Source: Octopus bimaculoides
Taxonomy: Eukaryota
Direction of reading: 5' to 3'
Assembly (NCBI RefSeq): GCF_001194135.2
Contig: NC_068982.1
Location: 87,326,751-87,390,750 of the forward strand
Length of the DNA: 64,000 nt
Shown: positions 1,959 through 60,384 of the stretch, piece by piece
Layout of the letters: every line of letters begins with the position of its first letter
Position numbering within the stretch: the first letter of the stretch is position 1
Translations under genes and position numbers: made by a program
Notes under the pieces: generated by a model
What the model saw: the letters and a program-made list of their open reading frames with translations, nothing else
What the model was told of the DNA's origin: nothing
Databases searched by the model: none

Positions 1959-2014
<56 letters not shown>

Positions 2015-2941: not shown

Positions 2942-2973
<32 letters not shown>

Positions 2974-7516: not shown

Positions 7517-7556
<40 letters not shown>

Positions 7557-10024: not shown

Positions 10025-10067
<43 letters not shown>

Positions 10068-10389
10068 TAGAGAGAGAGAGATAGAGAGAGAAAGAGAATT
10101 ATGTGCATAAATAAAACTGCTTGGTTTTGACATATAAAATACATATACACATGTAAATAGAAGGAAAGCAAAGCGAACATTTCCTGAAGATGACTATTCA
10201 AGCATAAATATATAGATATTTATATATTAATAGAGAAAACTGTGGACTTGGTTACTGATAAAGATATTGGAGTGTAAGTTCAAATCATTTACATGCTACG
10301 AAGTGTTTTCTATATTGAGAATCTCTGGATCTCATCTGTTGACTATATATATAATGATGATGATCATACACACACACACACGCACGCAC

Positions 10390-10605
10390 ACAAGGGGTGC
10401 TGGAAAGTTCCTGGCTTTGAGTAAAAGAAAATACAGGAGGATCAGTTAATTATGATTTTATTCAACATATTCACCTCTCAGATTCACACACTTATTGCAG
10501 TGGTCCCTCAGTTTTTTTTCTAAACCCTGTAAAAGGGTTCAGAAGGTTGGGCCTCCAACTTGGCCTTTCATGATACCCTTAAAGTGAGGAACATTTCAGC
10601 ACTCC
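10390..10605 (-). mobile_element. Mariner-derived MITE
   Basis: TIR-like GGGTGCTGGAAAGTTCCTGGCTTT at the left end with a degenerate mirror at the right. Reverse-oriented homologue of 16609-16811. Confidence 0.7.
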
Positions 10606-10611
10606 CACCCC

Positions 10612-10652
<41 letters not shown>

Positions 10653-14505: not shown

Positions 14506-15225
14506 CAATAATATATCTTTGATTGGAAGAACCCTGCAATATTTTCTATAAATGAGAAAATGTGACCCTGGGAGGGACTACATGACAAATATATAACTCA
14601 TTAGCTCTGTTTACAGTGTCAGCCTAGTCTAAAGATATAACTTAAGTCATTCATTTCCATCCATTTCAAAGTTTTTATCCTCATTAGCTTCCTATAAGTC
14701 CTTATCCCCACCTCTTCTCTGATTTTCTTGACCTTTATTTATTTATTTATTTATTTATGTGTTTCAGCCAAGTGGCTGCGGTCATGCTGGTGCACCACAC
14801 ATTTATGTTTATAATCCAGACAAAATATATAAAGATCTTATCTTTTATTGATTTATATTAGAGTGTGGAAGATATCATTCATCTTTTATATGTGTTCCAT
14901 CAATAAGATTAATGCTATTAAGAATGATGATTATATACACTGCCGTGTGCTTAATATTAGACTAAATGTCTGGAGGACCATAAAGTAATATCACTACCAA
15001 TTCAACACCAAAGACAAACACCAAGCTGACACAACCTATTGTGTATTAGACTATGCAACGATGAAACCGAGATGATTAAATGTGTATAACAAATAAAAAC
15101 AAACAAAAGAAACTGAGGTAATTTGTCAGAAATACAACAAAAACACATCAGTAATATTCAGTTCTATATTTAAGAGATGAGGAATTATTTACATTTGATG
15201 GATATTTGTTCTCATCTTGTCTGTT

Positions 15226-15271
15226 AACACAACGTTCCGGCTGATATAACCTCCAGCCTTCATCAGGTGTC
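15226..15271 (-). ncRNA. Minimal type-I hammerhead ribozyme-like motif (degenerate, GAAA>GGAA)
   Basis: Reads GACAC-CUGAUGA-A-GGCUG-loop-CAGCC-GGAAC-GUU-GUGUU. Stem I (GACAC/GUGUU), stem II and a palindromic ACGU helix III are present. Confidence 0.6.
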
Positions 15272-15336
15272 TTGGGGAAATTTCGAACCTGGGTTCTCAT
15301 TCCTAAGGTATTTTTCGATATTATTATTATTATTCA

Positions 15337-15409
15337 GGTCACTGCTTGGAACTGAACTCGGAATCTTGGGGTTAGTAGCCGATGCTCTTAACCACTATGC
15401 CATATGACC
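15337..15409 (-). pseudogene. tRNA-derived (Asn-like) segment inside the Penelope 3' region; truncated mirror copy at 16151-16216 (+)
   Basis: 73 nt GGTCATATGGCATAGTGGTTAAGAGCATCGGCTACTAACCCCAAGATTCCGAGTTCAGTTCCAAGCAGTGACC with A/B boxes and partial acceptor stem. The anticodon arm resembles tRNA-Asn (TCGGCTGTTAACCG). T-stem mismatched, so not a functional tRNA. Confidence 0.55.
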
Positions 15410-16287
15410 ATGGACAATTACGGAGTGAATTTTAAGGCTTATAAATCTAATATTTTCCTATCCTTCCTTAATACCGGTTCCCATATGCTACTCATATCTG
15501 CACTCGGTCTGCTTAGGAGGTTGTTGTTTCCTAGCATATGTGCTGCTTCTTTTAGTTTTCATATTTTCCAGCGGTGTTCTCTGTCTATTATTTTAACTTC
15601 ATCCTACCGGAGGAGGTGGTCTCCATTTTTTCATACATGATCAGCTATACCAGATTTATCAATATCTCCTCATGTCACAGCTTTGCAATGTTCGTCTACC
15701 CTTATTTTGAAGGAGTGGCATGTTCCGCCTTTGTATTACCTACCACAGCTGCATGGGATGGAGTACATGCAGAATATGACCAAAAACTGTGTGTGCTCCA
15801 TCCCATACAGCTGTAATAGATTATACAAAGGCGAAACATGCTACCCCCTCAAAATAAGTGTAGAGGAACATCGCAAAGCTGTGACACTGGGAGATATTGA
15901 TAAATCGGGTATAGCTGATCATGTATGGAAAAATGGAGACCACCTCCCCCTGTGGGATGAAGTTAAAATAATAGACAGAGAACACAACTGGAAAATACAA
16001 AGACTAAAAGAAGCAGCACATATGCTAGGAAACAACAACCTCCTAAGCAGACTGAGTGTAGATATGAGTAGCATATGGTAACCGGTATTAAGGAAAGATA
16101 GGTAAAAAATTAGATTTATAAGCCCTAAAATTCATTCCGTAATTGCCCATGGTCATATGGCATAGTGGTTAAGAGCATCGGCTACTAACCCCAAGATTCC
16201 GAGTTCAATTCCAAGCATAATAATGATAATAATAATAATATTGAAAAAGACCTTAGGAATGAGAACCCAGGTTCGAAATTTCCCCAA

Positions 16288-16330
16288 GACACCTGATGAA
16301 GGCTGGAGGTTATATCAGCTGAAGCGTGTT
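16288..16330 (+). ncRNA. Hammerhead-like motif, degenerate copy
   Basis: GACAC-CUGAUGA-A-GGCUG...CAGCU-GAAGC-GUGUU; GAAA mutated and cleavage-site region shortened. Confidence 0.45.
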
Positions 16331-16608
16331 AACAACAAACAAGATGAGGACAAATATCCGTCAAATATAAATAATGATCAGTATCATTGTTTTAACATCC
16401 ACTTTTCCATGCTGTCATGAGTTAGAAGCAGATTTTCTACAGGTTGATGCTCTTCCTGTTGCTAACCATCACTTGATTCTAAGCAAGGTAATATTTCCAG
16501 ATACATTTTTGCAGAATGCTAGAAATGACACTGCTTATATAACAGTGATACTCAAATACTACTCTCACACACCGTCAAGAAGAGGAAACAAACATTCACA
16601 TTCACGTA

Positions 16609-16811
16609 TACATGAGGGGATGCTGTAAAGTACCTGGCTTTAAGGGTATTGCGAAAAAGCTTTTACAGAGTTTAGAAAAACTGAAGGACTGCTGCAGTAA
16701 GTGTGTAAATCTGAGAGAGGAATATGTTGAATAAAATCATAACTGATCCTCATGTGGTTTTTTTTTTTTATTTTTTACCTAAAGCCAGGAACTTTTCAGC
16801 ACACCCTTGTA
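16609..16811 (+). mobile_element. Mariner-derived MITE
   Basis: TIRs GAGGGGATGCTGTAAAGTACCTGGCTTTA / TAAAGCCAGGAACTTTTCAGCACACCCTTGTA. The interior ends ...CSKCVNLREEYVE*, like the mariner transposase C-terminus. Confidence 0.75.
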
Positions 16812-18511
16812 TATGCACACACACATGCAACAACACATGTGCACATACAAATACAAACACGATGGGCTTCTTTCAGTTTCTGTCTACCAGTTCCACACAC
16901 AAGGCTTTGGTTGGCCTGAGATTATAGCAAAAATAATTTGTCCAAGGTGCGCCATACAGTGGAACCGAACCTGAAACTATATGGCTAAGAATCAAACTTC
17001 TTTACCAAACAGACGTGCCTGAACCTACATGAAATTAAAATTCACTCTTTTATTCCTGATTTCCAATTCAAAATATTAAAGATATAATTTTATTTGAAAA
17101 ATCTGATATAATGGCAAACAACATTTTTACTTAAAGCAATATAATTCACCCCCACCCCCAACATACTAATTTTGTGTGTTAGACTAGAAACTAATTATTT
17201 CAGCCTGTGTTACACTTAAAACTAAAACGAACTTTCAATTTACTATCATATCATCAGCATTCTTATAGAAGGTTGTGAGCTGGCAGAATCTCCAATGCAT
17301 CAGATAAAATGCTTTGCAACATTTTTTCTAGTTCTTTACATTCTGAATTTGAATTCTGCCAAAGTTGACTTTGCCTGGGGTCAATAAAGTGAAGTGTCAA
17401 TCAAGTGCTGAAATTAATGTAATTGACTGACCCCACACCCCCAAAACTGCTAACCTTGTGCCAAAATTAGAAACCATCCTTTTGTCATTATAATTGTTGC
17501 TGTTTTTGTCTGACATCATGTGATAGTTATAAACTATGCCATCCTTATATAATGCTTTGTTTTAAATTTTCTGTGAAAACACATGCGACCTTGGGGCAAT
17601 ATTACCTTGCTTAGAAACAGGTGATGGTGATAAGAAGGGGATATAACTACAGTTGGATGCCCTTCATGAAAATATGCCTCCATAAATTTTGTCTGACTGA
17701 TGCAAAGATGGAAAAGAAAGCAAGTGGATGTTAAAACAATTATTAGCATTTAGTTCTATATTTAAAAGATGAGGCATTATGTACATAATGTAAATAATTA
17801 TTATCATAATTATTAAGGTGGCAAGCTGGTTGAATTGTAAACATGTCAGACAAAATACTTAGTGACATTTCTTCTGGCTGTTCATACATTCTGAGCTGAA
17901 GTATGCACATAGGATCTCACATTGAGTGAGTTGAAAAACTATGAGCAACTGAGATTACCAAAACAATTAATAGACAAAAGTCTCCCTTTTGAGTGTTTAA
18001 CCCTTTAGCATTTAGATTACCCTATCAAATGTAATGCTTATTTATTCACATTGTTTTGAATTTATCATGCATTATCTCATAGTTTTGAGATGTAATTGTT
18101 TTGGCACAATGAAGACTATAGGGGATCTGGTCTCTGAAATCAACAGACATACTTCAGTCTTATTAAACCCTACTCTACTCAGTTGGTAAGATTAACAGTA
18201 ATATAGAAGTATAGGGAGGTCGATAATATCAACAACATGACTGAGGGAATGTACTTCAGAGAAGCATTCTGCATATTAAATACATATATGGCAGGGTCCC
18301 CACATATATAATATATGCTAATGAGAGATTAACTCCAACAGAACCCTAGATGTAATGAAATTATTGCCTTTTAACCCTTTGCCTATTCATGCAAATGTTT
18401 TGGGACAAACTTATGAATTTCCTTAAGTTTGTCCTAAACGTCCATGCTAATTTTTAGACTTTTAGTTAGCCCTTGTTTCATACATTGAGTAATATAAAAT
18501 TTTCATTTCAT

Positions 18512-18673
18512 AGGTGCTGGCATAGCTGTGTGGTCAGAAGCTTGCTTGCCAACCACATGGTTCTGGGTTCAGTCGCACTGCGTGACACCTTGGGCAAGTG
18601 TCTTCTACTATAGCCTTGAGCCAACCAAAGCCTTGTGAGTGGATTTGGTAGATGGAAACAAAGAAGCTTGTCA

Positions 18674-18708
<35 letters not shown>

Positions 18709-18885
18709 TTATTTATGTGCGTCTTTGTGTCTGTCACCCCCACCATTGCTTGACAATGGTGCGTTTATGGAGCTGAAACTTAGTTTGGCAAAAGAGACTG
18801 ATAGAATAAGTATTAGGCTTACAAAGAATAAGTACTGGGGTCGATTTCTTCAACTAAAGGTGGTGCTCCAGTATAGCCAGTCAAA
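18512..18885 (+). mobile_element. tRNA-derived composite SINE (head - microsatellite - tail). Related copies: + ~2016-2170, 2500-2695, 10890-11085, 24375-24578, 35550-35640, 39820-39930, 49925-50020, 53100-53320, 59245-59540; - ~8000-8090, 9060-9440, 11830-12215, 16860-17030, 42480-42830, 56290-56540
   Basis: Repeated head (GCTGTGTGG...GGTTCAGTCCCACTG...CACCTTGGGCAAGTGTCTTCTACTATAGCC) and tail (...GAATAAGTACTAGGCTTACAAAGAATAAG...GGTGCTCCAGCATGG...GACTGAAAC). Confidence 0.85.
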
Positions 18886-21800
18886 GTCTCTCAACTCATT
18901 ATATTACATCTGTGAATCCCCACCACAGAACTGACAAATGGTCATTAAAACAACAATTACAATGACAAAAATCAGCTTTTAAGTAGTTATTCTTAATTAT
19001 AAATAATTTCCAAAGATTATCATTATCTCCATGACATGGCCATAGAAACACTGTGTAAGAAATATCACAAATGTCTGCTTCGTTGCACTGTAAGCAATTG
19101 AAGTTGTGAATAATACAATTAGTTCACAAGAATGGTCATCTATCTATAGAGTTTCTGGCTTTATTCACTGACAACTAATTTATCTTGAATGGCTTACTAA
19201 AACTGGAAATTTTTAATCAGCCAGCAACAAGCATCATTATGAAGATAGATTGGATGCATGATTGTTTTGGTTCTCAGCTTTAGCCATTTCACTGAAGTTG
19301 CTGTAATGACATTGTGAAAGGCATGAACAGCACAACTTCAATTTCCTTATTTCTTCTAAGACCATGTGCCAATTTTATATTAAAAAAAAAATCAATATAA
19401 ATCAGTTTGTGACAGGTGCAGGAAAGCTGAGTGAATTTGTGACCTGGTTTTGATTTAAAAATTGAAGTTCAGAAGACATTGTCTTTGTAACAAATCAATA
19501 TCTAATTAGCTTTATTTGTCACACATCCTACCATACCAAAGATATTTGGCATTTAAAAAGATGTGCTCCACATTAACTGGAAAGATAACAGTTAAGCTCC
19601 TTTTAAATTTCCGGTTTTTAAGTAGTTTTCTTACCTGAATATCTTCAGTACTTAACTATGCTGAAAGTCTATTAGTTTTAGCAAACTATTACAGTGGATC
19701 TTTCTGAGGAAAGAATTTTCTATTCAAAATCCAAAAGTAGTAGTTTTGAATGTGTTAGGAGACAGAACTGAAGAACAGCAGAGTAGTGACAGAGGTGAGG
19801 AGTGAAAAAGTAATCATGAATGAGGGGAAAAAAAAATCAGCATTATCATCATAGTTTAATGTTCACTGTTCCATGGTTTAGAAAATTTGTTGAGACAGAT
19901 TTCCTACAGCCAGATGCCATTCCTGTCACCAAACCTCACCTGTTTCCAAGCAAGATAATATTTCCCCATCATCAGAAAGGTTTTCCAAGGAAGACTATAA
20001 ATGAACATTACTTGTGCAACAGTGATGTTCATTTACAACTATCATGTGATAGGGTACACACTAATATGCGCACACACACACACACATCTTTTAAGTTTGT
20101 TTACGAGAAATGTCTTGAATATGCAAGTAAAACTATTCCATTATGCTGGCTACAATCTAATGTTGCTGACTGGTGAACCAGTTTTTGTGGGTTGCACCAA
20201 GCCATACTGATATAATATGGGATAAATATAGTAATAATAATGCATCAAGATATTTATAAATTCCATCCAAAGATTTTTATTATTAGTGTGTGTGTGTGTG
20301 TGTATATGTATATCAGGCCTCTTTCCAGTTTCTGTCTACCAAATTCACTCATAGGGATATGGTGGAAGACGCCTGCCCTAGATGATATGTAGTATGGCTG
20401 AGCCAGGGACCACATGTTTGTGAAGCAAATTTCTTAAACACAAACATTAACATATTTAATAAAGTTTGTTGATAGGAATTAAATTATATCCTTGAACAAA
20501 TTTAGTACCTGTAATAAGTCCATAACCTACTAGATTGAGCAACATCATTAAAAACTTCATACACATGATAGATGGGAGAAAGTCAATCTAGTGCAAAAGC
20601 AAAATAGCAAGTGTGTTTGATCACCTAAAAAGTCTTGATTTCAAACTCACCATAGAGTTTCATTGAGAATTTGAACACTACACTTAAAACCTCAGTCTGC
20701 ATAACTGCTGGAAATGGGTACCAAATTATTTAAAACCTATGATAAAATGTTGGTAGGATTAGGGACAAAATTTGTCTTTTATTGGAACTGTGGATTCAGT
20801 GCAAAACCTATTTTGGCATTGGATGCTTAGGTGCTAAGAAAATTTATTTATGCTCTACATAACAATTAACTTCAATCACTCACTGCTACCAAATTACTAA
20901 ACCTCATTTAGAATTTTTACTTAGGCTTTGTTTATGTATCTAATGGCTGGTGAATTATTGATGAAACAGGAATGAAGAAGCAAAAAAAAAAAAGCATTTG
21001 TGCATAATGTATTTCTTTCATATTTGCAAAGCTGGCATAGCAGATAGTTATCTTAAATTTTGATGCAGTGAACAAAAAGATTCAGAGCAAAACAGGGTCA
21101 CATATATAATGAGTGATAGAAATAGCATCCAAATCTTTATTCAGTCACACCCTATTGTTTAAAAAAAAATTAAGGACACTTCTAATAATGTACATCTGGA
21201 TATGAAAAGAAAAATATGAGCAACAAAATGGAAGTAGGGAGTTACTCAAGTGAAAAGAGAGCAAGGGAAGTTTGGGATATAAATGGTTTGAAAGTAAATC
21301 TGAAATGATGTCTGACAGAGACAAAGTCAAAAGTAACCTTCCATATATTTACTTAACCCATTCCAACATGGAATCTGGCTACTAAAGTGGTAAAGGTGGT
21401 GATAACAGCTGTAGTGATTATGAAGGTGGTGGTAATTGAGATGGTGAAATTGGTAATAGTGATGATGTTGGTAGTGTATACTCATACAGGCTTCTGTTCT
21501 ATTAAATCATAAATTTATAAATTTCTGGAGAAAATGTTTGTGTAGCCAGATGACATTCCAATTGTTAACTACCATTATCTCATCAATACTAACCAAATCA
21601 ATCACAATTAGCTGATTATCTTAGGATTTAAAAGTCTGTCAACGTAAACATTTTTAATAGCTTTTACTTCTCAAACATAATAGTACTAATAGAGGACTGG
21701 GATGAATTTTATTCACAGTAGCCTTGCTTCTGATGAGAATGTCATAAGTAGATTGTACCTACAAACATCATTATGAAGCAGGCCTTGGACTGTAATTTGC

Positions 21801-23179
21801 TTTAGACAACTCCTGATGAAGTTGCAAGAGTACTGTCATGACATGCAACATGATTGAGGCACCTTTTAGACCAGAAGGAGCTCATCCCTCCCCAGATTTG
21901 ACTGCAATTGATTTCTTCCAAAGGGATGGACAAATGGACAGAAAGAGCAATAGAAAGAGAAGAATCGACTCTGAAACAGAACTGGCAATATATCACTTTA
22001 TCAACCCTTGAAAGGATGAAAACAAGTTTACGTCAATGCTATTTGAACTCAGAGTGCAGGGGGCTAGAACAAATACTGTGACAACTCATTCACTTCACTG
22101 CCTTGAATAATCTGAGTCCCAAACCCTTAAAAAGTCATAGGTACCAATTTAAAGCTGGCTTTGATAGGGAACCAGAATACATTGTTTTCAAAGTGAAGAA
22201 AAGTAATCTGAAGCCAGCAGAGTATTGTTTTACCAGTAAAAAAAAAACAAAAAAACATACAACAGTAACAGGATTTGAACTACTGCCCTTATAGTCAGTA
22301 GTTCAATGTCTTAATGTAACAACTTTGCTCTCTTCTAAAATGGGATTTAGATCAGTTCCTCAACTGAATCTTTCTTCATATAGAGATTTGGAGGCACTGT
22401 GGTTCTGATTCCTGGACTGGGCGACGTGTTCTTGAGCAAAACGCTTCATTTCATGCTATTCAGTCCATTCAGCTGGCAGAAATTAGCAATTGTGTGACAG
22501 ACCGGCGTCCTGTCCAGGTGGGGAATTTATATGCCATGGAAACCTAAAAACTGGCCCTTATGCGCCAGCATGACTCAAGAAATTAACTTTTTCTTTTTTT
22601 TTTATATATATATAGAGATGTAAATCAGTATAACAATGTTGTTTAGTCCTAGGTTAACTCTAAAAAGTAAACCTTTGTTCAAGGATCAACTGATCTTTCT
22701 TTTGTCCTAATAATGTATTTCAGACTTATATGTGTCTTTAAGCCAGTAAAAGTAGGGAGATTTGACTGCTACCTTTTGGTGGTTCTTCACTGGCCTTGAC
22801 AGAGCATGTGCTTAGCCCCCAGATCAGCTCTGATTGAGTAGCACTAGATCAAAGTTATTCCAGGCAGGACAATCTGTTTTTTTAAGAATATAAAGATCTA
22901 TATTATCCAATGTATTATTTTAAGGACACTTGGGTATGTGTCTGGCTACTGCTTCCTTTCTTATCTTGGCCACTGCCAAGCTTGCACGAACTTTCTTCTC
23001 TCTTCCTTTCAGTTTGTCACATCACAGCGTTCAGTATACACATATATATTTTTTTTTCACGTCTGGCCCAACTAGCCCTTCTTGTTTATTTTCACTGTTT
23101 CATTTTCCTGTCGCGTTTTCTGTTTGCCACTATATTCCTCCACATTACAAATTTAATTTGTTTCCACGGGAACAGCCAT

Positions 23180-23345
23180 TCTAACAATGCATCCTGCCCT
23201 AACTCTTCAAAACGCTTAGTTTTAGAATGGTGGCAGCTGATGAAGGAAATGTTCTCTATGTGGCCTGCATGTTTTCTGTGCTCTGTTTATGTTCTGTTTC
23301 TCATTTTGTCCAGGTTTTTTTGTGACGTCCTGAACCCAGATATGC
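23180..23345 (+). mobile_element. Possible Penelope-type terminal-repeat remnant
   Basis: CAGCTGATGAAGG motif in a pyrimidine-rich context like the other PLE ends. Confidence 0.3.
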
Positions 23346-23417
23346 ATCTATATATACATGTAGATGTAGGTATGTACATACATGTACGTATATATGCATA
23401 TACTCACATATTATTTG

Positions 23418-23458
<41 letters not shown>

Positions 23459-24895
23459 CACACACAGTGTTCATATATGGCTGTTGATTTACTCTTACAA
23501 GTTAATTAGCCATATGAAATACCAACAGGTTACACAGCCCTAGTTGATATTAGATAATTAGAAGTTAAATCCATTACCCCAGAAAATAATATCTCTGAAT
23601 ATTGTTCTTAATGTTTTTCTAACTTTTTTGTTTTTAACCATTTAACATTATATAATGAATACAACATAGTACAGATGTCCACCACATAGGGTAAAAAATA
23701 GTCAAAAGTAATGGATATGAGATTAATTTCAAATCATTATTTAAAATAGTGCAAAAATATATTGCCATCATCATCATTTTATCATCCCTGGGCCAGATAG
23801 AGTTTGTTGAGGCAAATTTTCTAGAGCCAGATGCCCATCCTATTATCAACCATGAGCTGTTTCCAAGCAAAGTAAGATTTCCCTGTGGCCAGACATACTG
23901 TCACAGAAGATTGGAAATGAACAATATTGTTTGTATGATGATGCTCAGTTACCACTATCACGTGATGTCAAGACAAGGAGAGACAAGCACACACACACAC
24001 ACAACAGCTTCTTCCAGTTTTTGTTCACAAAGTCTATCACAAGGCTTTGACAGTTGTCCAAGTTGCCACAGTGGGACTGAACCCCACACAGCTACTTGCA
24101 CCTATATATAGACATTAATATATATATATATATANNNNNNNNNNNNNNNNNNNNNNNNNNNNNNNNNNNNNNNNNNNNNNNNNNNNNNNNNNNNNNNNNN
24201 NNNNNNNNNNNNNNNNNNNNNNNNNNNNNNNNNNNNNNNNNNNNNNNNNNNNNNNNNNNNNNNNNNNNNNNNNNNNNNNNNNNNNNNNNNNNNNNNNNNN
24301 NNNNNNNNNNNNNNNNNNNAAGAAGTCCGTCTTATATATATGTATATATAGAAATATGTATGTGTGTGTATATGTTTGTGTGTCTGTGTTTGTTCCCCCA
24401 ACATCACTTAACAACCGATGCTGGTGTGTTTACGTCCCCGTAACTTAGCGGTTCGACAAAAGAGACCGATAGAATAAGTACTAGGCTTCCAAAGAATAAG
24501 TCCTGGGGTTGATTTGCTCGACTAAAGGTGGTGCTCCAGCATGGCTGCAGTCAAATGACTGAAACAAGTAAAAGAGTATATATATATATTAACTAGCACT
24601 CTGTTGGTTGCAACAACGAGGGTTTCAGTTGATCAGCCTGCTCATGAAATTGTTGTGTACTCCACAGACACATGTATCCCTTAATATTGTTCTCATGGAG
24701 GTTCAGCGTAACACAGAATGTGACATGGATGGCCCTCTGAAATACAGGTACAACTCATTTTTGCTAGCTGAGAGGACTGGAGCAATGTGAAATAAAGTTC
24801 TTGCCTAAGGACACAATGTGCAACTGGGAATCGAACTCATGGCCTTATGGTTGTGAGCCAATTACCCTAACCAGTAAGCCACACACCTTCACTAT

Positions 24896-25232
24896 ATATG
24901 AGACTCCCTTCAGTCATGACTGACCATGAGATTGCACCTAGAAAGTTACCCTCCCAGGCACAAGTCCGGGCAAGGATGTTTATGGAAGACCAGCAGTCAT
25001 CCATACATACCAGCCTCCCCTCTCCACGCCACCAGTGTTATCCAAGGGAAAGGCAAAGACATACAGCTTGGCACCTGTGACATCGCAACTCATTTCTACA
25101 GCTGAGTGAACTGGAGCAACGTGAAATAAAGTGTCTTGCTCAAGAACACAACACGCGGCCCGGTCCGGGATTCAAACTCACAACCTCACGATCGTAAGCT
25201 TGATGCTCTAACCACTGAGCCATCTGCCTTCA
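24896..25232 (-). mobile_element. tRNA-headed SINE with conserved central domain. Related copies ~22390-22570 (+), 24620-24895 (-), 40580-40800 (+), 41500-41830 (-), 52410-52545 (-)
   Basis: Head GGCTCAGTGGTTAGAGCATC...GGTTGTGAGTTTGAATCCCGG and shared core TGTGTTCTTGAGCAAGACACTTTATTTCACGTTGCTCCAGTTCACTCAGCTG. Confidence 0.8.
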
Positions 25233-28090
25233 CCACTATATATATGTATGTGTGTGTGTGTGTGTGTGTGTGAAAATATTATTTCCATGCTGACATTTTC
25301 ATTACTTTTTGCAAAGATTGCTTTTACAGCTAACATTAACTGGGTATGCTTTTAATTATATGCCTGGAGCAGATGGGCAGTGTCCATAGATAGCTCTACA
25401 CAATTTATATAATTATGTGGTTAATAATGGGATGTGTTTAATGTTTCATTCGAATTATAGTCGATCAGCAATCAGAGAGGAACAGGTAATGTGTACAGAA
25501 GGGAGGAATTAAAGAGTGTAGTGGGATGTAGGAACCAAGTGTGCTAAGAAAGATCTAGCAATTGTAATGGAAAGAAGTATGTCAAAGCTGGTGAATATTT
25601 CAAGAGAATGAGATTAAAGCTTGTAAAATGGAGACGGCTATTATTGTAGTCATAAAGGAAACCTGTAACTAGATTCAATCATTACACAGCAACCATGATG
25701 GAGCAGAACATTCATTAAACTCAATATTTTGTCAGGTACTTATTGAAGGATAGAAAGCAGAGTCAACCAAGGGTAAAGAGAAGCAGTTAAGATGAATTGA
25801 AAATAAAAAGTATGTTAATTTGATGCACTCAATTTTTGCCAGTGTGCACCAATAGATGCAAATATGTGCAGACACACACAAGGAAAAAGTTGATAGTTGC
25901 TTTGAAGTTTTGAATGTAGGTTCAAGACAGCTGGTTGATGAAGGCTATGCAATTGAAACTTCAAAGTAATTATCAACCTTTTCTTCTTATAAATGATATA
26001 AAAAAGTTACTCTACTGAAAGGAACTGAGTGGTACTTCAAATTAATGTTTCAACATTTGTTTGTTTGAACATTTGTTTGAATGTTAGTCTGCTTGTTTTA
26101 ATGTGTGTGTGTGTGTGTGTGTGTGCGCGCGCACGCACACACATATATATATCTACCGTCATCATTTGATGTCTGTTTCCCATGCTGGCATGGGTTGGAT
26201 GGCTTGACAGGGACTGGCAAGCTGCACCAGGTTCCAATTATGTTTGGCATGGTGTCTATGGCTGGATGCCCTTCTTAATACCAACTACTTTAGGGTGCAC
26301 CGGGTACTTTTTACATGGTACCAGCGCCAGCAGGGTTGCCAAGTAACTTGCAAGACAAAAGCCTCTCAGTTGTGAGAGGGGGGTGAAGCCAAAGAGAGTG
26401 ACAGTCTGCCAGGTGAGAGGTTAAAATATGATAGAGGGACAGAGATAGTTGTCTTACTATAGAGGAGATACTTGGCTATCCCAGTAGGACAAAGAAGGAA
26501 GGTGGGAGAGAGTTAGAGAGAACGATAGAGAGAGTCAGAATATGAGAGAGAGAGAGAAATAGATGGTGTTGGAGATGTATTGAGGCCTATCTACAGTGAA
26601 CAGTGGAGGTGGGAGTATAAGTAGTACAGAGGGAATAGAGGGGCATGTTCCATAAGAGTTAGGGGATATGTTTAGAAATGAGGAAGACAGCAAATAATGG
26701 TGAGGAAAATCGGAGAGGCTGAGAGGTGTGGTAAGGAAAATATGTGAGGACATGGAGAGTGTGTGGATAGGCACAAGAAAGTGGAGGGCCCTGCCGTGGG
26801 AGAGGAGCATGAGGTAGAGCGGAGTGGAAAGGCTTGCAGTGGGTGGGACACATGAGGGAAAGTGGTGGGGAGAGGCCTGCAGCAGGTATTGGGAAGATGG
26901 GGGAGTTTTAACAAAGGCCAGATAATGCCTGTGCATGTGAGATGGGGGGTAGGTCTATGAAGGACATGTGTGTATGTGTGGATGGCCATAATTTTACTTA
27001 GCTTGACATGTGTTCTCAAGCACAGCAAATCACCAGAAGTCTTGGTCTCTTGTCATCTCTGTGAGGCTCATCCAGCTGTAGAAACAATGCTAAAGCAGAC
27101 ACTGGAACACAAGCAGTTCTCAGACCACTGAATCTTGTCAAACTACCCAACCGTACCAGCATGAAAGATGGACATTAAAAGACTACGATGATACATATAT
27201 GCATATATATCATTAACCTCATCATTTAACATCCATTTTCCAGACTGGCATGGATTCAGTCATTTGATTGGATCCAATGAGTTGGTAGAAGCATCTAATG
27301 TCTGTTCTGGCATGGTTGGATGCCTTTCCTAATGCTAACCACAGTACAGAATGTACTGGGTGCTTTTTTTGAGGCACTAACACTAGTGAAGTTGCTTTGC
27401 ACCTTGCAAGACTATAATGGCCTAAAGGAGAATAGAAGAAAACGTGAAAGGGTAAAGTATGATGAAGGGAACAGACAGCTGGGAAAGGGTGGTAGAGAAG
27501 AGAATAACAGAACAGACACTATCGGAGGAGTATGGAAGGAATAAGGGAAAATGGATTAATGTCAGGGATTAATGAGAACAACCGAATGATAAAGATAAGG
27601 TGGGTTGTGTACAAGGGTCTTGAGCTATTCCACATTGCTAGAATGAATAAGGAGGGAAAATGTGACGGAGAAAGGAACATGACAGAGGGTGGTGAGGATC
27701 TGGAGAGAGTCACTTAAAGGGGAATAGAGTGAGTTGGGGATAGGCCAGAGAGGAAGAGACATGATGGTATAAGGGAACTTGTGAGAAGAGGACAGTAAGA
27801 GAAAATGTGACAGACAGTGGGGAGCAGTGGGTGAGTGCAATGAGAGTAGTGAGGGAAAGAGAAGCTGGAAGTGAAGGAATATAGTGAGATATGGAGAGAA
27901 GAGATCGTAGAAGTTGAGAAGCACAGAATGAAAGTAGTAAAAGCATCCCAGATGGGGAGGCTCAGTGAAAGTAGCAGCAGAGGAGTTGTGGATGACTGCA
28001 GCAAAAGCATCCCAATCACTAACCATAAATATATATATTTATTCAAAGTGGTGGTGCCCCAGCATGGCAGCAGTCTAATGACTGAAACAA

Positions 28091-28127
<37 letters not shown>

Positions 28128-30333
28128 CATCATCATTTAATCTCTGTTGCTCATGCTGGCATAGGTTGGATGATTTGACCAGGGCTGGTAAGCTGAGAGG
28201 CTGCGCCAGACTCCAGTCTGATTTGGCATGGTTTCTCTGGCTGGATGCCGTTCCTAACACCAACCACCTTGAGAGTGTAATGGGTGCTTTTACATGTTAC
28301 TGGTACAAGTGCCAGTTGTGTGATGCCAGTATCTACCACGACTATGATTTTACTTGGTTTGATGGGTTAAGTACAGCATATTGCCAAAGGTCCCAGTCAT
28401 TTGTCATTGCCTCTGTGAGGCCCAATGCTTGAAAGGTGTTTTTGCTTGGGACCATGCAGTTGCAAAGTGAACTACTTTAGCCACACAACTTAGCAAAAAA
28501 CAGTTGAATGATAAGCAAATGGCTAAATATCAATCAAATGGCAATGGTTTCTTTTGATGTAATGAAGAATGCAGGCATATATGTATGTATGTATGCATGT
28601 ATGAGTGCAGCAACATCCCAGATACAAGTAGCACTCTAGTGTAATCATTTGATAGCTGTTCAGCACAAATAGAAGCATTTACTAGCCCTGAAACAAAGCC
28701 CAGTCTTAGTAATACAATTTTAATAATGTAAATAATATGATGTCTCAGAGATTTATCAACAAAATAATTTATATTTATATCCTAGCTATGAGTGGAGGTC
28801 ATGGCTACTGGCCAAAGATAAATGATAAAATATTAATGGAAACTTTTAAATATCTTAGGTAGTTGGTTACCATGCTTCAGTACTTTATGCAAACAATACC
28901 AGAAATCACTTAATAATTTTACAAAATTAGAGGTAATTTGAGCGAGCTATTAATTAAAACATAATATAGTCTAAATAAAGCAAATTTAGGAGTATTAAGA
29001 AAAAATGTTTTTACAAGCATCAAACCAGGTTTTTTAGCCTCGTCTTGAAGCACTTCAAATTCTATTTTGTATACTGAGTGGTGTAGGGAATGGAGGATTA
29101 TTTATTATTAGTTTTAATATATAGACATACCAACTGGGATTTTAAAGTGGATTTAAAGAATATGAATTGAATGGGATTGCAAAATTATAATGAATATAAT
29201 GGTTTAGCCCATGCCATTTTATAAATGTATTCTCCTAAGGAACAAAAATAGCAACATTAGCACTAACAATTCATCACCAATTGTTTCATGTTAACGTGGC
29301 TGTTTGTGACAAATACGCATTGTTGCATCTTTCCATAAATATTGATTCTGTATTATCTCCTGACATCAAACCTATCAACACCTATTGGCCTTAATCTCTT
29401 TCACCAGCACAAAGACACAATCATTACACATCAAAGAGACACACATTTAATGCACCTAATGTGCAGACAGTATAACATGCAAGGAAAGCTTAAACTATTT
29501 TGAAACCATGAAATGATAGCAAATGAAAAGAGAAGTAGGTCCCTTTTGGGTTTACTCTCTTTTGTATACCATATTTAGAGGAAATATTATGGTCATCATA
29601 GCAATTGATACAGTGATGGAAGTTAGTTGGCAGCATGGCTCAAAATGTCAACACATCTGACAAAATTCAATACCTTCTTTATATCTATCTTCATAATGAC
29701 CTTTAGTGACAAACCCTGAGAAATATGTTAGCCTGTTCATAAACAACAGCCTAAAAACATTGTGGAGCATCCAATCCCAATTGAGTGAGAAGAAAACATT
29801 TAGAGAAGCTCATAACACAAGGTTAGAGTGAAACTTTTGCAGCTAAGCAATAGCAAACATTATCAACAGTAAATGTTCCCAATGTCAAAGGGGTTGATAT
29901 TCCCATTGGGGTGGAGGTGAAGTTGGGTACCAAAAATAAATTTCTTGATATAGTCTGGAAGAATGTTTTTGAGGATTCATCATCATTTAATGACCACTTT
30001 CCATGCTTGCATCAGACAGAATTTGTTGGGGCTGCTTTTCTATGGCTAACTGCCCTTTCTGTCACCAACACTCACTCATGTCCCATTGTCAGACATATTT
30101 TTCACAGAAAACCGGAAACAAACAACATCACTTGTATGTCAGTGATGCTCATTTACACCCATGTTATGAGATTTAGACAAAGGTACACTTCCCCAGAAAA
30201 CAAAGTCAACTTACTTGGAGGTTGACAACAGGAAGGGCATCCAGCTGTTGGAAATCTACCTCAACGAATTCTGCCAACGCATGTGAGCATGGAAAAGTGA
30301 AAGTTAAAACAAGGATTATACAGACACACATGC

Positions 30334-30377
<44 letters not shown>

Positions 30378-30637
30378 GCTTTTTATGTGTCACCAGCACA
30401 GGTGCATTTATGCAGCACCGCATGAGTACATTTTATGTGGCACCAGCACCTGTAAAGGTGCAAGGCTCCATACATACAGGCTTGTGCCTCTGTGGTATGC
30501 AAAAAGCAACCAGCACACTCTGTATAGTGGTTTATGTTAGGGAGGTCTGGACAGCCCCCACACCCAGCTGACTAGCTCCTATCAAACTATCCAACCTGTG
30601 CTAGCATAGAAAACATGTTAAACGATTATATATCTTG

Positions 30638-31195
30638 TGAAGTATATTTGCCACCTAAATGTGGCTAACCCTTAAGGGTTGATGCTACTGTAGCTTGTAG
30701 CGCCAGGAAGACATCTCCAGCTGGCTATTGACACACTATCTGTGCCCAATCAGTANNNNNNNNNNGACATCTCCAGCTGGCTATTGACACACTATCTGTG
30801 CCCAATCAGTATTTGCAATGGGAAGTCATCGTTCCCATCTCCAGCTTGACATGATACACATGGACCTGAGTTTCTGGATATTGACCCATCATCAGCATGT
30901 GACAACCACTGGTTGGCGATGGGAAATGATTCTCAATGCAAATATATATATATACTTTTTCCAGTGACGAAAAGTCACTGATCTTGAAAAAGTGGAAACA
31001 AGCAATATTCAGAAACTCGGGTCCATATGTATTACGTCAGGCTGGAGATGGGAATGATGACTTCTCTTTGCAAATACCGATAGGGCACAGACAGTGTGTC
31101 AATAGCCAGCTGGAGGAGATGTCTTCCTGGGACTACAAGCTACAGTAGCATCAACCGTTAAGGGTTAGCCACATTTAGGTGGCAAATATACTTCA
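30638..31195. mobile_element. MITE with long terminal inverted repeats
   Basis: TGAAGTATATTTGCCACCTAAATGTGGCTAACCCTTAA... is mirrored at 31195. The arms pair over ~200 bp; an N gap with artefactual duplication lies in the left arm. Confidence 0.85.
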
Positions 31196-33476
31196 TGATG
31201 TCGTGCAGCTACTGTTCATACCTTACTCAGAGATTTATTATTGCTTATATATATATATACATGATAACCTGAAGAACAGCAGCTGACAACTGGTATTTTG
31301 TCGAGGTGAAGTAAACCTGATCCACAATTCTGTTGTGTATGAAATGAAAAAATGCTATGTAAGATTGAATGTAATGGGAATTAAATCGATTTCTATTTCT
31401 TTTTGTAAGTTTTCTAAATGAATATTTCTTTCCAGGATGGCGGTAGATCATTATTTTCTTGTCCATAAGTTGAAACATTTTAATGGAAAAAAGTTGCTTA
31501 AGTTCGCCATCAACACAAGCACTGAAGCGAGTTAAACCTTAATTTTTTGTTTTGCATTCATTTAATTTTTATTTTGTATATAAAAGAGTTTTTACAGGAT
31601 GGAGCTAAATAACCTATGGTAAAGAGCGAAACAAAAATGTGATTTGAGAGTAAAAAAATTAATAAATATGTGATGGCAAAGTGTGAAAGACAAAATAAAA
31701 GGGGTGGGGGTATTATAAAATGGAATTCTGAAGAATTTTTTTTCAAGAATGAAATGGTAATAAAGGATGAAGAGTGATGAAAGGTGGAGGATAAGAAATT
31801 TGAACAACATGAATTAAAATTTTTGCTTTTCTAATTCAAATTACAAGTCTATCAGAAATGTTTCAGGGTGTGGAATACTATAAAAAATGATGGAGGAAGA
31901 AAATTTAATGTTGAAAAGTACTATGAAAGAAAGTGGAGTGAATTTTTTTTTCCTTTTTTTTTTCTCTAAAAATGCAATTTACACGAGTTTCTTTAAAATG
32001 TGGAATACAAAAACATGAAGTAAACGTAAAAATATATTTCTGGCTGCTGTCATGATGGCGGTGAAGCAGACGTTTAAAAAAATATGGATTTTAATTTTTT
32101 TTTAATGCCCCACCACCGCCAACATTGTTTCGAAACGTAGCTTACAAAAACTTGAGAAAATCTCCAAAAAAAAGGGAGAAATTCCGATTTATGTGGAGCG
32201 ACTGTTCCGAAAGTCCACCACTAAATATTATTATAAATGGTTAGGATACAAAAACAAAATAACTATTGACAGTCTACGCTGAGAAATAATGCATAACAAA
32301 CAGTTAAAAAGTGGGATAAGGTTTGCCGTAAGGAAGATGAATATATCGCATAAACCTGGGACATTATGCTTAAATAAGTAATCAATAAACAGATGTGGCA
32401 ACTTCACACAATATGTTCGTTAATGTTCCCCGTCCTTTACTTCAACACTTGTAAGAGTGAAGTGAGCGAAGAAGCTCCTACTTAATCGCTTGCCCTGCTG
32501 AAAATAGTTAGTAAGATCTCTCTTCAAAAGCTTCTACATCGTTTTGAAAATAAAGTTCGTGTTTTAAAACACTGTATCTTACAACAGTATATCTAGGATA
32601 AAACTGGGATGGTCACTGCTGCGAGAATGACGAAACGATAAATTTGGACTGAAAACGAAACGCCATTCATGTGTTGAACCTGTTGATCGTTCATGCTACA
32701 GGTTCAACTGCTCACTTCAGGGCCATAATTCTACTCTAGAAAAAGTTGATTGTAGCTACAGAGCTATTCAATAAAAATAAGTTATTAGTAAACAGTAGAT
32801 TGTTAATAAGCTGATAAGAAACTTTATTTAGTTATGTAATAAATGTGCAACAACATAAACACACATACAATATATATATACACACACACACACACATAGA
32901 TATATACACAGAGGATATATATATATATATATATATATAGTAAATGAACCCTATAATACAAGGAGTCCTCGAGGTACACTATACCAGGCCATCTGTCTCA
33001 CCTCTCCATATAGCCCTACATAAAAGTAGTCCGTATTTTACTAATCGGGTCGATCCCATAAGGTACAGAGCAATGTAGAACTACGATAAACACTAGTCGA
33101 TCTACACCACTACAGACTCTTTCAATCAACATTTAAAAACATGAAGAAAAAAAAAACTGGTGGCGGTCTGCGTTGGCAAGAATTTTGTAAATGAAGTTCA
33201 TGATTTCGGATAAATTTGAAGGCAATGGGGAAAAGGGAAGAATCTGTCTCTTAGGGGGTTGTCCCTGGGTCAGAGAGTGTAAAATAATTTTCTAATTTCA
33301 GACGAAGAGAAAGCCCTATAATGTTAGATACAAGTTTCCCCCCCATAGCTGAAGAAGTTCTCTAAACACACGAACTACTAACATGGTCAATGTGGACATC
33401 ACATGCCCCCGCAAAGAAACAAATGGATTTATGCCTATGCATAGAGAAAATCTTCGTTTATAATCAATAAAAGTAC

Positions 33477-33555
33477 CTACTATTTTTTTCAGCTGTTCTG
33501 TTTGTGTAACCGGCTTAGGATCACTATCAAAGCCACTGTCTTCCATACCATCCAT
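33477..33555 (-). CDS. FAM219A: First coding exon of a divergent gene, probably FAM219 family (MDGMEDSGFDSDPKPVTQTEQLKKIV + 1 nt)
   Basis: A strong polypyrimidine acceptor (...gttttatgttag|CTACG) opens the exon at 33586; ATG at 33555; donor GTAG|gtactt (phase 1; alternative ATA|gtaggt in phase 0). KPVTQTEQLKKIV aligns loosely with human FAM219A KPSPLQVKL(EKQRE), and human FAM219A is head-to-head with DNAI1. Only 26 aa are visible, so identity is tentative. Confidence 0.5.
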
Positions 33556-33800
33556 CGGCAATGTGAATTGTAAATCCAGATCGTAGCTAACATAAAACAA
33601 ACGGGGAGAAAATGAAAATAGTGATGGAAAGCAAAGAAAGAGTAAATAAGATTCCAGCAATTGAACTCTGTCTTTGCTATTATGTTGGACTATAACAGCA
33701 ATAACGATCAGAGAAGTATTGCCAGAACATTTTAGGCAAAAGGAAATTAAACGAGCAGCAGTAAACAATATTTATATCTGGAATCCCACGAATGCAACTA

Positions 33801-33808
33801 CCGGAAGT
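33801..33808. promoter_or_regulatory. ETS-type motif CCGGAAGT
   Basis: Perfect ETS core in the locally CpG-richer region between the two start codons. Confidence 0.4.
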
Positions 33809-34034
33809 AGAATTGTAATCATGTGACAACAGTAGACGAATATTATTTACCGCTTGGTAAATACACGTCTCTTGTTCACAAGTTCGATTCTGGGTTTAGA
33901 TCGATCGATAATTATTCTTTAAATTGTATAACTATTTCCCGGATAGATATTTCTATTAAAAACAAAATTTTTGATTATATTTATTTGTAATTTTACTCTG
34001 TATTCACAACGAAAACGTGTTTTCTGTTCCTTAC

Positions 34035-34085
34035 CTTCGTAAATAATCTTGGCTTTCACCTCGTGTCAACCGTGATTATATTTAT
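34035..34085 (-). other. Putative non-coding first exon of the minus-strand gene (5' boundary unknown)
   Basis: Minus-strand donor GAAG|gtaagg at 34035/34034 could splice to the acceptor at 33587 (448-bp intron). Confidence 0.45.
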
Positions 34086-34100
34086 GTAACCCATAGCAAC
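34086..34100. promoter_or_regulatory. RFX X-box motif (GTAACCCATAGCAAC)
   Basis: Fits the consensus GTNRCC-N0-3-RGYAAC exactly and lies just upstream of a motile-cilia gene. RFX control of ciliary genes is established. Confidence 0.75.
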
Positions 34101-34173
34101 TAACGCACACCTTACTTTTCTAGATATCAAGCACTAAATTGTTTGAGTTAATTTCTCAATTTACTCTTTTAAA

Positions 34174-34203
34174 ATGCCATCCAAATCTTTAAATAAGAAA
34201 GCG
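34174..34203 (+). CDS. DNAI1: Axonemal dynein intermediate chain 1, putative coding exon 1 (MPSKSLNKKA)
   Basis: ATG at 34174 (aaaATGcc), 10 open codons, donor GCG|gtacgt in phase 0, matching the phase-0 downstream exons. Lies ~75 bp downstream of an RFX X-box. The N-terminus is poorly conserved, so support is splice signal plus position. Confidence 0.7.
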
Positions 34204-36331
34204 GTACGTATAACGTAGAACTTTTAAACGTTTTTATTTTTAATCAATGTGAATTACCTTTAGTTTATTGGCTACGTTAGCGTAACACAAAACTATTCAA
34301 ATCGTTTAGTAACTGTTGCCTGGGCTGGCAGAAAATGTAATTATACATAGAAATTAAATAATATATGTTTTAGTCTTATTCTTACATATGAATATTCCTT
34401 TTAATTACCTTTAATATTCAGTTTAATTATCTTTATTTGAGACAATTAAGGTAATTCTAAACTGGTGGAAAGTGTTAACTGCTCACTAAATTAAATATAT
34501 TAACACTAACTTATTTGCATTCGTGCGTGCGTACGTGTGTGTATGTGTGTATGTTACTTATCCTCAAAACAATTCGATTTTTCTTATGCATTTCCATAGT
34601 GATTCTTTCCTCGCTACTACAGCAAGTATGGTGAAGTCTTTGCATGGCTGGTAAAAAAAAAAGTCTAAAACATGTTCGAAGTTGTCTCTCTTAATTATCG
34701 AACTATTTGAAATATTGTTAGTCTTAGATTAATTTTCTTTTTCGCACTGTATAATTATTTCAAGTTAACGTTTTCATGTTCCTGATACTAAATATAACAA
34801 CACAAACCTAGTATCTGAGATTGTTTCAATTATTGTTAAATACGAATTTTTCAGACTAATTAAAAACGAGGAGACCTACAGAATATAAGCTTTGCAGGGA
34901 CAAGGATTGGGCTGTTAAGAGAGATAAAATTAATGGATAAAATGAGTTAATATTTAATCATATTGTTGTCAACTAATTACATTATGTAAAATAATCCATT
35001 GGTTTCCTAATTTAATATAGTATTGATTTTTCTATATTATGCAAAATGATTTAACAACTACTTCAAGAAATGGACATTGTTTCTATAAATAACCACTAAG
35101 CTGTGAGGTAAGAGTGAAAATTATTGTCAACCAAATAGACCGAGGTTATCTGAATATTGTCTTGAGTTGAGGTATAACTCAATGGCCATAGATTTGTGTT
35201 TCTGAGCTTTGTTTGTTCAGAAATTTAGTTATCTTAACTTCTCAACATTTCATTTCATATTTCTTATAAATGGAAAACTGTTCAAGTTGTATGACTGTTG
35301 TTGAATCATTTCCATCATAACTTTTACAAGACAACTTGGATGTTCAACCTCACACTATTGTGTTAGAAAGAAGAAAGGGCTGATATTCAAGAATGTAATT
35401 TTCTTTGTCTATTGAATTTCAGATATTGTTTTACTGACTTTTAAATAGTAACACAGTTTTTAGAGAGTAAAACTTGTTTCCCTTAGTGTGATGAGTAATT
35501 AAATGGCAAATGTATGCTTTATTTTGATCATTTATATACTATAAGATGTGGGTAAGGCCAAGTGTCTTCTGCATTAGCTCTAGACCAATCAAAGCCTTGA
35601 GTGGATTTGGTAGACAGAAACTGAAAGAAACCCATTGCATATAATATGTGTGTGAGATTGTGTCTCCTTATTTTGACATCATACTATAGTTATAAATGAA
35701 CATTGCCATCATACAAGTGGTATCCTTCATTTACAAACTTCCATGAAAATATATCCAACCATGGAGACATATTACCTTGCTGAAAATAGGTGCAGGTTGG
35801 TGACACAAAGGGCTTCAATGAATTCCATCAGATTTATGTATGTATGGAAAAGCAATGACAATGATGACAATTTCCTTTCCTTTTCTTATTTATTCTTTCT
35901 CCATTCTTTATTGTTTACCTTTGTAAAATGCCTTCTTTTTTTATTGAAATCCAAAAATCAGTATTTGAATACCAAAAGTTGGATACACAAGAATTGACTA
36001 GACACTCTTATTTTTTATTTTTTTTTTTTGTATCATGTGAAAATGGTTTTATCTTCAGTGCACAAAAATCAATAAGCTTCTTCTTCAAAGAGTTAAAAAC
36101 TGTTGTGTAATTAGTGAAAGGTGAGGAAATGCATGGGTTATTTCAAAGAGTGAATGTCCAACTTATACCACATCTCTAAGACATATTACAGATACTTATA
36201 GTTATTTTGACTATGTTGATCATACAATAGAGAAAGGTAGAATGTATATGAAATGAAATGAAATTTATTCTATGTTGTATCAAACATGGACATCAATATC
36301 ATCTGTCATTGCTTCAATATTATCAATTTAG

Positions 36332-36388
36332 AGCACTCAGATTACAGGAAATGTGGATATGTTGCGAAGGAGAATGACAAAAATCAGG
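36332..36388 (+). CDS. DNAI1: DNAI1 putative coding exon 2 (STQITGNVDMLRRRMTKIR)
   Basis: tcaatttag|AGC...AGG|gtaagg, 57 nt, open in phase 0-0. The basic character parallels human exon 2 (SISIGRGTRKR, recalled). Confidence 0.6.
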
Positions 36389-48206: not shown

Positions 48207-48260
48207 GATGGTGATGATTTAACTGAAACTGGGGATGCTGATACAGAAGACTGGATGCAT
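48207..48260 (+). CDS. DNAI1: DNAI1 coding exon 3 (DGDDLTETGDADTEDWMH)
   Basis: ttttgaag|GAT...CAT|gtaagt, 54 nt, phase 0-0. Resembles human DEDSGTEVGEGTDEWAQ. Confidence 0.85.
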
Positions 48261-50916: not shown

Positions 50917-50964
50917 AGTAAAACATTAGTGAAGCCGGATGACCAACTCTATTTGACTGAAGCT
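50917..50964 (+). CDS. DNAI1: DNAI1 coding exon 4 (SKTLVKPDDQLYLTEA)
   Basis: tattttggcag|AGT...GCT|gtgagt, 48 nt, phase 0-0. Matches human SKATVRPPDQLELTDA. Confidence 0.92.
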
Positions 50965-52735: not shown

Positions 52736-52870
<135 letters not shown>

Positions 52871-60257: not shown

Positions 60258-60384
60258 GAAAGACAGTATAAACCAATCTCAACTGTTGATCAACTGGCTG
60301 TCCATTTCACTCTTGATGGTAACATCATCCATAAAGATTCCGATGAGGCAAGGCGACAATTTATGCGAATGAATGTTCCAGATG
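60258..60384 (+). CDS. DNAI1: DNAI1 coding exon 6 (ERQYKPISTVDQLAVHFTLDGNIIHKDSDEARRQFMRMNVPD, ends phase 1)
   Basis: cactttttag|GAA...GATG|gtattt, 127 nt. Matches human [35 protein letters not shown]. Confidence 0.95.

Follow-up and report, generated by a model that had tools for sequence, protein, structure and literature searches.

The closest described counterpart of the locus studied here is the vertebrate DNAI1-FAM219A pair, located in human at 9p13.3, in which the two genes are divergently oriented with adjacent 5' ends. The conservation of the DNAI1-FAM219A (C9orf25) linkage between human, chicken and Fugu was published in 2006 (Li et al., 2006; PMC1487180), and a human methylation probe annotated both as DNAI1 body and as FAM219A TSS1500 places the TSS1500 region of FAM219A within the DNAI1 body (PMC12731890). 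In a wider context, the pair resembles the conserved ancestral microsyntenic pairs of metazoans, such as HSPE1-HSPD1, in being arranged 5' to 5', with a gap below 1 kb in most lineages, and in being kept in deuterostomes and protostomes alike; such signatures have been attributed to cis-regulatory constraint (Irimia et al., 2012; PMC3514665). Here we describe the same two orthologues in a stretch of 64,000 nucleotides of Octopus bimaculoides (contig NC_068982.1, positions 87,326,751 to 87,390,750), referred to as the window, whose positions 33481-34203 contain, with high confidence, the 5' ends of a divergent FAM219A (minus strand) and DNAI1 (plus strand), sharing one island with two modules and inherited from the bilaterian ancestor. 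DNAI1 encodes intermediate chain 1 of the axonemal outer-arm dynein (IC78). The pair is real, ancient and ordinary in kind, as conserved bidirectional pairs are already well known and this one has been published for vertebrates, so that no biology of a new kind is involved. Unlike HSPE1 and HSPD1, the products of FAM219A and DNAI1 have no known functional relation. Our literature search found no text on the pair outside vertebrates, although supplementary lists may contain it.

The window consists of AT-rich eukaryotic DNA (about 35% guanine plus cytosine, G+C) that is strongly depleted of CpG, is interrupted by assembly gaps and contains many microsatellites. On the minus strand, the frame starting with the ATG at 33555 reads MDGMEDSGFDSDPKPVTQTEQLKKIV and is followed by two GT dinucleotides, at 33480 and 33476, while on the plus strand the ATG at 34174 is followed by the codons for MPSKSLNKKA and then by GTACGT at 34204. 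A preliminary description of this DNA had placed the DNAI1 start and the ATG of a second, minus-strand gene at these two positions, about 620 bp apart, and had proposed that the second gene is FAM219, neighbouring DNAI1 divergently as in human. Both statements agree with our results: the ATG-to-ATG gap is 618 bp, which puts the 5' ends of the divergent genes less than 1 kb apart, and the identity of FAM219A is given by octopod proteins and tblastn. The features of the locus are listed in Table 1.

Table 1. Coding and putative regulatory features of the FAM219A-DNAI1 locus of O. bimaculoides, in window positions.
Feature	Position	Strand	Description
FAM219A intron 1	1..33480	-	At least 33.5 kb; exons 2-5 beyond position 1
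CpG-undepleted island	31600..35100		Only one in 64 kb, centred on the intergenic interval
FAM219A coding exon 1	33481..33555	-	MDGMEDSGFDSDPKPVTQTEQLKKI, 75 nt, 25 codons, phase 0, donor GTAGGT from 33480
Conserved non-coding block with ETS-type site	33782..33841		ACCGGAAGT at 33800-33808, ~245 bp upstream of the FAM219A ATG
RFX-type X-box, perfect	34086..34100	+	GTAACCCATAGCAAC, 74-88 bp upstream of the DNAI1 ATG
DNAI1 coding exon 1	34174..34203	+	MPSKSLNKKA, 30 nt, donor GTACGT
DNAI1 exon 2	36332..36388	+	STQITGNVDMLRRRMTKIR, phase 0/0, AG/GT sites; 84% identical to Argonauta L001 635-714
DNAI1 exon 3	48207..48260	+	DGDDLTETGDADTEDWMH; aligns to Bulinus DDLTETGE..DDWMQ and human DEDSGTEVGEGTDEWAQ; AG/GT sites
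DNAI1 exon 4	50917..50964	+	SKTLVKPDDQLYLTEA; aligns to Bulinus AKALVKPDDQLELTDV and human SKATVRPPDQLELTDA
DNAI1 exon 5	52781..52861	+	Matches human DNAI1 (PDB 8j07 chain m1) from residue 60 onward
DNAI1 exon 6	60258..60384	+	Matches human DNAI1 together with exon 5; gene runs past 64000

A tblastn comparison of the FAM219A protein of O. vulgaris (P0301) with the window gave 25 identities in 25 residues at 33555-33481 (E = 1.5e-13). In this protein and in XP_014779489.1 of O. bimaculoides itself (P0340), the N-terminus encoded by exon 1 is followed by ENSNHAKNG...ELQKKIERQRDASRK... and leads into the FAM219A body, the exon boundary reading ...LKKI/ENSNH, and the FAM219A-like isoform X1 of Argonauta hians (P0268) begins correspondingly with MDGMEDSGFDSDPKPATHTEQLKKI/ENCNH.... 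P0301 and P0268 score 57.3 and 61 bits, respectively, against the Pfam family PF15260 (cut-off 27). At the DNA level, exon 1 is 85% identical to its Argonauta counterpart and the donor is kept at the homologous place (ATT/GTAAGT). The exon had previously been described as coding for 26 amino acids plus a phase-1 G, ending at 33477; its start is correct, whereas its end lay 4 nt too far, because the octopod proteins stop matching after the Ile codon that ends at 33481, which leaves 25 codons in phase 0 and the donor GTAGGT.

The opposite view would be that the minus-strand frame arose by chance or belongs to an unrelated gene and only resembles FAM219 spuriously. PF15260 does not match the window exon by itself, a search with the exon padded by intron read-through in a word-indexed protein database yielded no candidates, and a full-length invertebrate FAM219 profile ranked the exon first among the 3437 open reading frames (ORFs) of the window, but with a score of no more than 7 bits at an E of about 1. 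However, the PF15260 model begins at human residue 54 and leaves exon 1 uncovered, and the word-index search is unreliable, as it missed P0191 despite seven common 5-residue words. Human FAM219A likewise found no match in the window by tblastn, exons 2-5 lying outside it and exon 1 not being conserved with human. Against these results stand the complete identity with annotated octopod FAM219A N-termini and the preservation of exon and donor in Argonauta, whose exons 2-5 lie further downstream and on the same strand. The octopod proteins, the tblastn match and the mapping of the five exons refute a chance or unrelated frame, to which we attach practically no probability.

The preliminary description was right in its conclusion on FAM219A and wrong in its argument, which was based on an alignment of the exon tail KPVTQTEQLKKIV with human KPSPLQVKL/EKQ. 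We rejected this alignment because the corresponding motif, ELQKK[IL]/E[RK]QR, sits at the junction of exons 2 and 3 in invertebrate FAM219A genes (exon 2 ending in ...ELQKK[LI], exon 3 starting with E[RK][QH]R) and is outside the window. What does identify the exon is MDxMEDSGFDSD, an N-terminal motif of protostome FAM219A proteins (pattern M-[DE]-x-M-[ED]-D-S-G-[FI]-[DE]-S-D) that the preliminary description had not drawn upon and to which the window exon conforms with MDGMEDSGFDSDPK.... The corresponding N-termini are MDSMDDSGFDSDPK in Lineus, MDSMEDSGIESDQR in Lingula, ..DSMEDSGIDSDQK in Solemya, MEDSGFDSDTSK in Tachypleus, MEDSGFDTPDE in Capitella, MDSMEDSGFDSDQK in Pecten and MDSMEDSGIDSDQK in Patella. 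In this respect the octopod protein differs from human FAM219A, which lacks this N-terminal exon. The protostome proteins were reached through a library of representatives at 50% identity, queried with vertebrate FAM219A; with human FAM219A as the database query, only vertebrates were among the top 120 matches listed. The cephalopod proteins were retrieved with a chimeric query composed of the window exon, the FAM219A body of Solemya and the putative DNAI1 N-terminus, which found cephalopod FAM219A and no full-length cephalopod DNAI1, although the Argonauta contig has such a product.

When the protein of each species was mapped to its own locus, a conserved five-exon structure of FAM219A was obtained, in which exon 1 comprises 21-26 codons including the N-terminal motif in Patella, Pecten and Owenia. 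In Argonauta, exons 2-5 are located 24.6-42 kb downstream of exon 1, with exon 2 at 24.6 kb. Neither tblastn with the octopod proteins nor the profile search of all ORFs found exons 2-5 in the window, and the motif DGYxLD..PDDEDLDLIPP, which is encoded by exon 5, is absent across the window according to a motif scan and tblastn. As the octopod proteins that have exon 1 of the window do contain this motif, its absence is due to the edge of the window and not to the gene. Compared with human, the introns of the octopus are far larger, intron 1 of FAM219A exceeding 33.5 kb.

Two of the octopod FAM219A models deserve mention. The O. bimaculoides protein P0340 goes under the name 'uncharacterized protein LOC106875748' and lacks Pfam matches; after ...QPLVAIMSDD it runs on as RMVPDVFVHL..., which resembles a read-through past the donor of exon 4, where the genomic sequence of Argonauta reads MSDDR*V (locus L001, positions 43847-43936). 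Without the exon carrying the LIPP motif, it is probably a truncated FAM219A model. Isoform X2 of FAM219A in O. sinensis (P0275) has the alternative N-terminus MSRLPFLRE joined to exon 2, which corresponds to sequence directly upstream of exon 2 (L001:34655-34753) and suggests a second, internal start of FAM219A that would bypass the exon adjacent to DNAI1.

On the plus strand, the ORF pieces at 52.8 and 60.3 kb, exons 5 and 6 of DNAI1, match residues 60-125 of human DNAI1 in PDB 8j07 chain m1 with E = 8.8e-27, followed among the PDB matches by another mammalian DNAI1 (9fqr) and then by IC78 of Chlamydomonas. The conserved N-terminal region of DNAI1 (...VDQLAVHF) is present in the window, while the C-terminal WD40 part lies beyond position 64000; WD40/beta-propeller Pfam matches are found in the 677-aa product of Argonauta and in the FAM219A neighbours of Patella, Pecten, Owenia and Ptychodera (701-759 aa). 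The exons were assembled under the guidance of N-terminal DNAI1 fragments of molluscs and vertebrates. All six have AG/GT boundaries, exons 1-5 are in phase 0, and the product obtained by joining exons 1, 2, 3, 4 and onward aligns from residue 1 with Bulinus MPQKQQQKVKATQSLERKRSKRNEDDLTETGE.... Starts of the MP[SP]K type also occur in the annotated DNAI1 of Patella (MPPKAPVKGK), Pecten (MPPKAIGKGK), Ptychodera (MPSKAKGKQV) and Owenia (MPPKGGKGLK), and DNAI1 of Bulinus begins with MPQKQQQK.

The DNAI1 model of Argonauta (677 aa) begins one codon into exon 2 (L001:640-696), namely at L001:693, and exon 2 of the octopus contains in-frame ATGs (MLRRRMTKIR). It could be argued from this that DNAI1 starts at the 36.3-kb exon, that 34174-34203 is non-coding or an exon with an upstream ORF, and that the coding starts of the two genes are about 2.8 kb apart. 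However, the first codon of the Argonauta model is ACT (Thr) and not ATG, so that this gene model is truncated at its 5' end, and its left-out exon 1 is found 2.5 kb further upstream (L001:3224-3253), reading MPSKPLNKKG/GTATGT with an intact donor. The changes in exon 1 between the two octopods are mostly synonymous or conservative, exon 1 reads into exon 2 in frame (phase 0) in both, the MP[SP]K start matches DNAI1 of five other species, and a conserved X-box lies upstream of exon 1. We therefore consider a start in exon 2 very unlikely; the start motif, the conservation in Argonauta, the in-frame splicing and the upstream X-box all mark 34174-34203 as the predicted true start of DNAI1.

For the comparison across animals, FAM219A proteins were located by exact-sequence look-ups and their 10-kb flanks were searched with DNAI1 fragments by tblastn. 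The tabulation of distance and orientation, which the preliminary description had recommended, shows divergent FAM219A and DNAI1 genes with ATG-to-ATG gaps of 220-452 bp in four species: the annelid Owenia fusiformis (220 bp), the bivalve Pecten maximus (254 bp), the gastropod Patella vulgata (274 bp) and the hemichordate Ptychodera flava (452 bp). In the octopod Argonauta the genes are divergent as well, with a gap of 6747 bp that contains no assembly gap and exceeds 1 kb. DNAI1 was not found within 10 kb upstream of FAM219A in Lineus longissimus (nemertean), whose neighbouring gene is of the Methyltransf_32 type, nor in Tachypleus (chelicerate), Holothuria (echinoderm) and Priapulus (priapulid). 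Since the pair occurs in the same orientation in deuterostomes and lophotrochozoans, the simplest explanation is that it was inherited from the bilaterian ancestor and then lost several times independently. The persistence since that ancestor, as originally proposed for this locus, is in this sense the economical reading of the gastropod, bivalve, annelid and hemichordate pairs.

The interval between the two genes stands out by its composition. The ratio of observed to expected CpG is 0.23 in the whole window, 1.22 in 33556-34173 and 1.6 at its peak, and all 618-bp windows with a ratio of at least 0.8 fall within 31.6-35.1 kb. A single CpG island, judged by its sequence to be of the unmethylated type, covers both gene starts.

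RFX X-boxes are the usual drivers of motile-cilia genes. As in such promoters, octopus DNAI1 has a perfect GTNRCC-N3-RGYAAC less than 100 bp from its ATG, and by analogy with ciliary gene promoters RFX would be expected to bind it. No other match exists in the window, where 0.11 would be expected by chance. In Argonauta, a block with the X-box agrees in 27 of 28 nt and keeps its distance from the DNAI1 ATG; the conserved block around the X-box extends over 34079-34237 of the window. In contrast to the octopods, the gaps of Patella, Pecten, Owenia and Ptychodera contain no exact X-box and none with up to one mismatch; the X-box-like sequences picked there by eye have at least 2 mismatches.

ETS-type sites are typical of broadly expressed or housekeeping promoters. 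The window has a single copy of the ETS-type motif ACCGGAAGT, where 0.08 would be expected by chance, the block around it is 87% identical to Argonauta L001 9046-9107, and CCGGAAG is also present in the intergenic regions of Patella and Pecten. This block is probably the core promoter of FAM219A, to which, by analogy with housekeeping promoters, an ETS factor would be expected to bind. In the window, 277 bp separate the X-box from the ETS block; in Argonauta the distance is 5.7 kb, without an assembly gap in between, and since both are kept at that distance, the two promoter modules are physically separable.

Two further observations concern these intergenic regions. An NRF1-like core is seen in the FAM219A-DNAI1 gaps of Owenia (GCGCATGCGC, L007:9781-10000), Ptychodera (CGCATGCG, L005:9549-10000), Pecten (GCGCATG, L004:9747-10000) and Patella (CATGCGCA, L002:9727-10000) and not in the octopus interval, in a comparison made by eye and without statistics. 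In Argonauta, about 650 bp are inserted between the ETS block and exon 1 of FAM219A (L001:9110-9900), carrying two copies of a tRNA-like sequence (...GCTCAATTGGTAGAGCGCTGAACTGGAG...), which are probably tRNA-derived short interspersed nuclear elements and would help to explain the expanded intergenic region of this species.

We favour the following explanation for the persistence of the pair. From one hypomethylated island, transcription would run outward into both genes, and each gene would have a proximal module of its own, the X-box about 80 bp upstream of the ATG for DNAI1 and the ETS block about 245 bp upstream for FAM219A. An ancestral gap of a few hundred base pairs filled by two promoters would offer a tiny target for breakpoints, and almost any break inside it would damage the promoter of one of the genes, so that obligatory co-regulation would not be needed for the pair to persist.

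A stronger reading is a true shared bidirectional promoter, in which co-regulation through common cis-elements has kept the genes paired since the bilaterian ancestor; the preliminary description had similarly proposed a shared regulatory constraint. In accordance with this, five lineages belonging to four phyla have very short gaps of 220-618 bp, both starts lie within one CpG island, and Irimia et al. (2012; PMC3514665) report that co-expression and gaps below 1 kb are enriched among conserved 5'-5' pairs. However, the DNAI1 module (X-box and exon 1) and the FAM219A module (ETS block and exon 1) of Argonauta are both retained at a distance of 5.7 kb, the modules bear different types of motif, and adjacency was lost in four of the sampled lineages. 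In human, moreover, DNAI1 is restricted to ciliated tissue and FAM219A is broadly expressed. Because of the gap expansion in Argonauta and the four losses, tight coupling is not obligatory, and a shared constraint is not demonstrated by these data; we regard a shared promoter as a rather unlikely explanation and prefer two separate modules within one island.

To our knowledge, no function has been assigned to the FAM219A protein, which makes co-regulation the more interesting alternative. Its most far-reaching form, in which FAM219A is tied to the biology of motile cilia or outer dynein arms and a head-to-head linkage of half a billion years reflects co-regulation from the common island in ciliated cells, appears improbable to us; if true, FAM219A would be a candidate ciliary gene or a candidate related to primary ciliary dyskinesia.

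Several points weigh against the reading of 33481-34203 as a whole. The splice from 33481 to exon 2 of FAM219A is predicted from the gene models of O. vulgaris, O. bimaculoides and Argonauta. The transcription start sites and the use of the X-box and the ETS motif are likewise sequence-based predictions, and both motifs were chosen after inspection of the sequence. A FAM219A leader beginning at the ETS block would include the upstream ATGs 33731 and 33594, so that the start site of FAM219A may be nearer to its ATG. Finally, the four lineages without adjacency show that the linkage is not obligatory, and a looser linkage beyond 10 kb could be missed in them.

The analysis corrects and completes the annotation of the locus, in which the 'uncharacterized' protein of O. 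bimaculoides is probably truncated and the DNAI1 model of Argonauta lacks its first exon. It also adds molluscs, an annelid and a hemichordate to the vertebrates for which the head-to-head pair had been published. The pair has withstood the heavy rearrangement that cephalopod genomes underwent and is a clean and easily scored marker of ancestral bilaterian microsynteny. The contrast between 618 bp in Octopus and 6.7 kb in Argonauta, with both modules intact, represents a natural experiment that could separate persistence by common regulation from persistence through a gap too small to be broken safely.

The large introns of the two genes show some additional features. The window segments 12000-14400 and 26500-28100 have a G+C fraction of 0.45-0.47 against a background of 0.35 and a GC skew of -0.39 and +0.39, respectively, and contain long proline/serine/histidine-rich ORFs in several frames and small N gaps. 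The ORFs sampled from them had no Pfam match, and a long inverted match between the two segments was not found. The idea that the long ORFs at 12.5-13.2, 15.6-16.1 and 44.5-45.3 kb encode retroelement domains was dropped, as Pfam gave no support. A homopolymer of about 200 nt (T on the plus strand) occupies 49380-49583, in the intron that separates exon 3 of DNAI1 from exon 4. Intron 1 of FAM219A contains a near-perfect palindrome at 15184-16375 around a 14-nt centre, built from three nested pairs of inverted repeats (320, 150 and 114 nt) that are 90-96% complementary and whose arms carry mirror-image ORFs; the palindrome probably arose when a repeat element was duplicated in inverted orientation.

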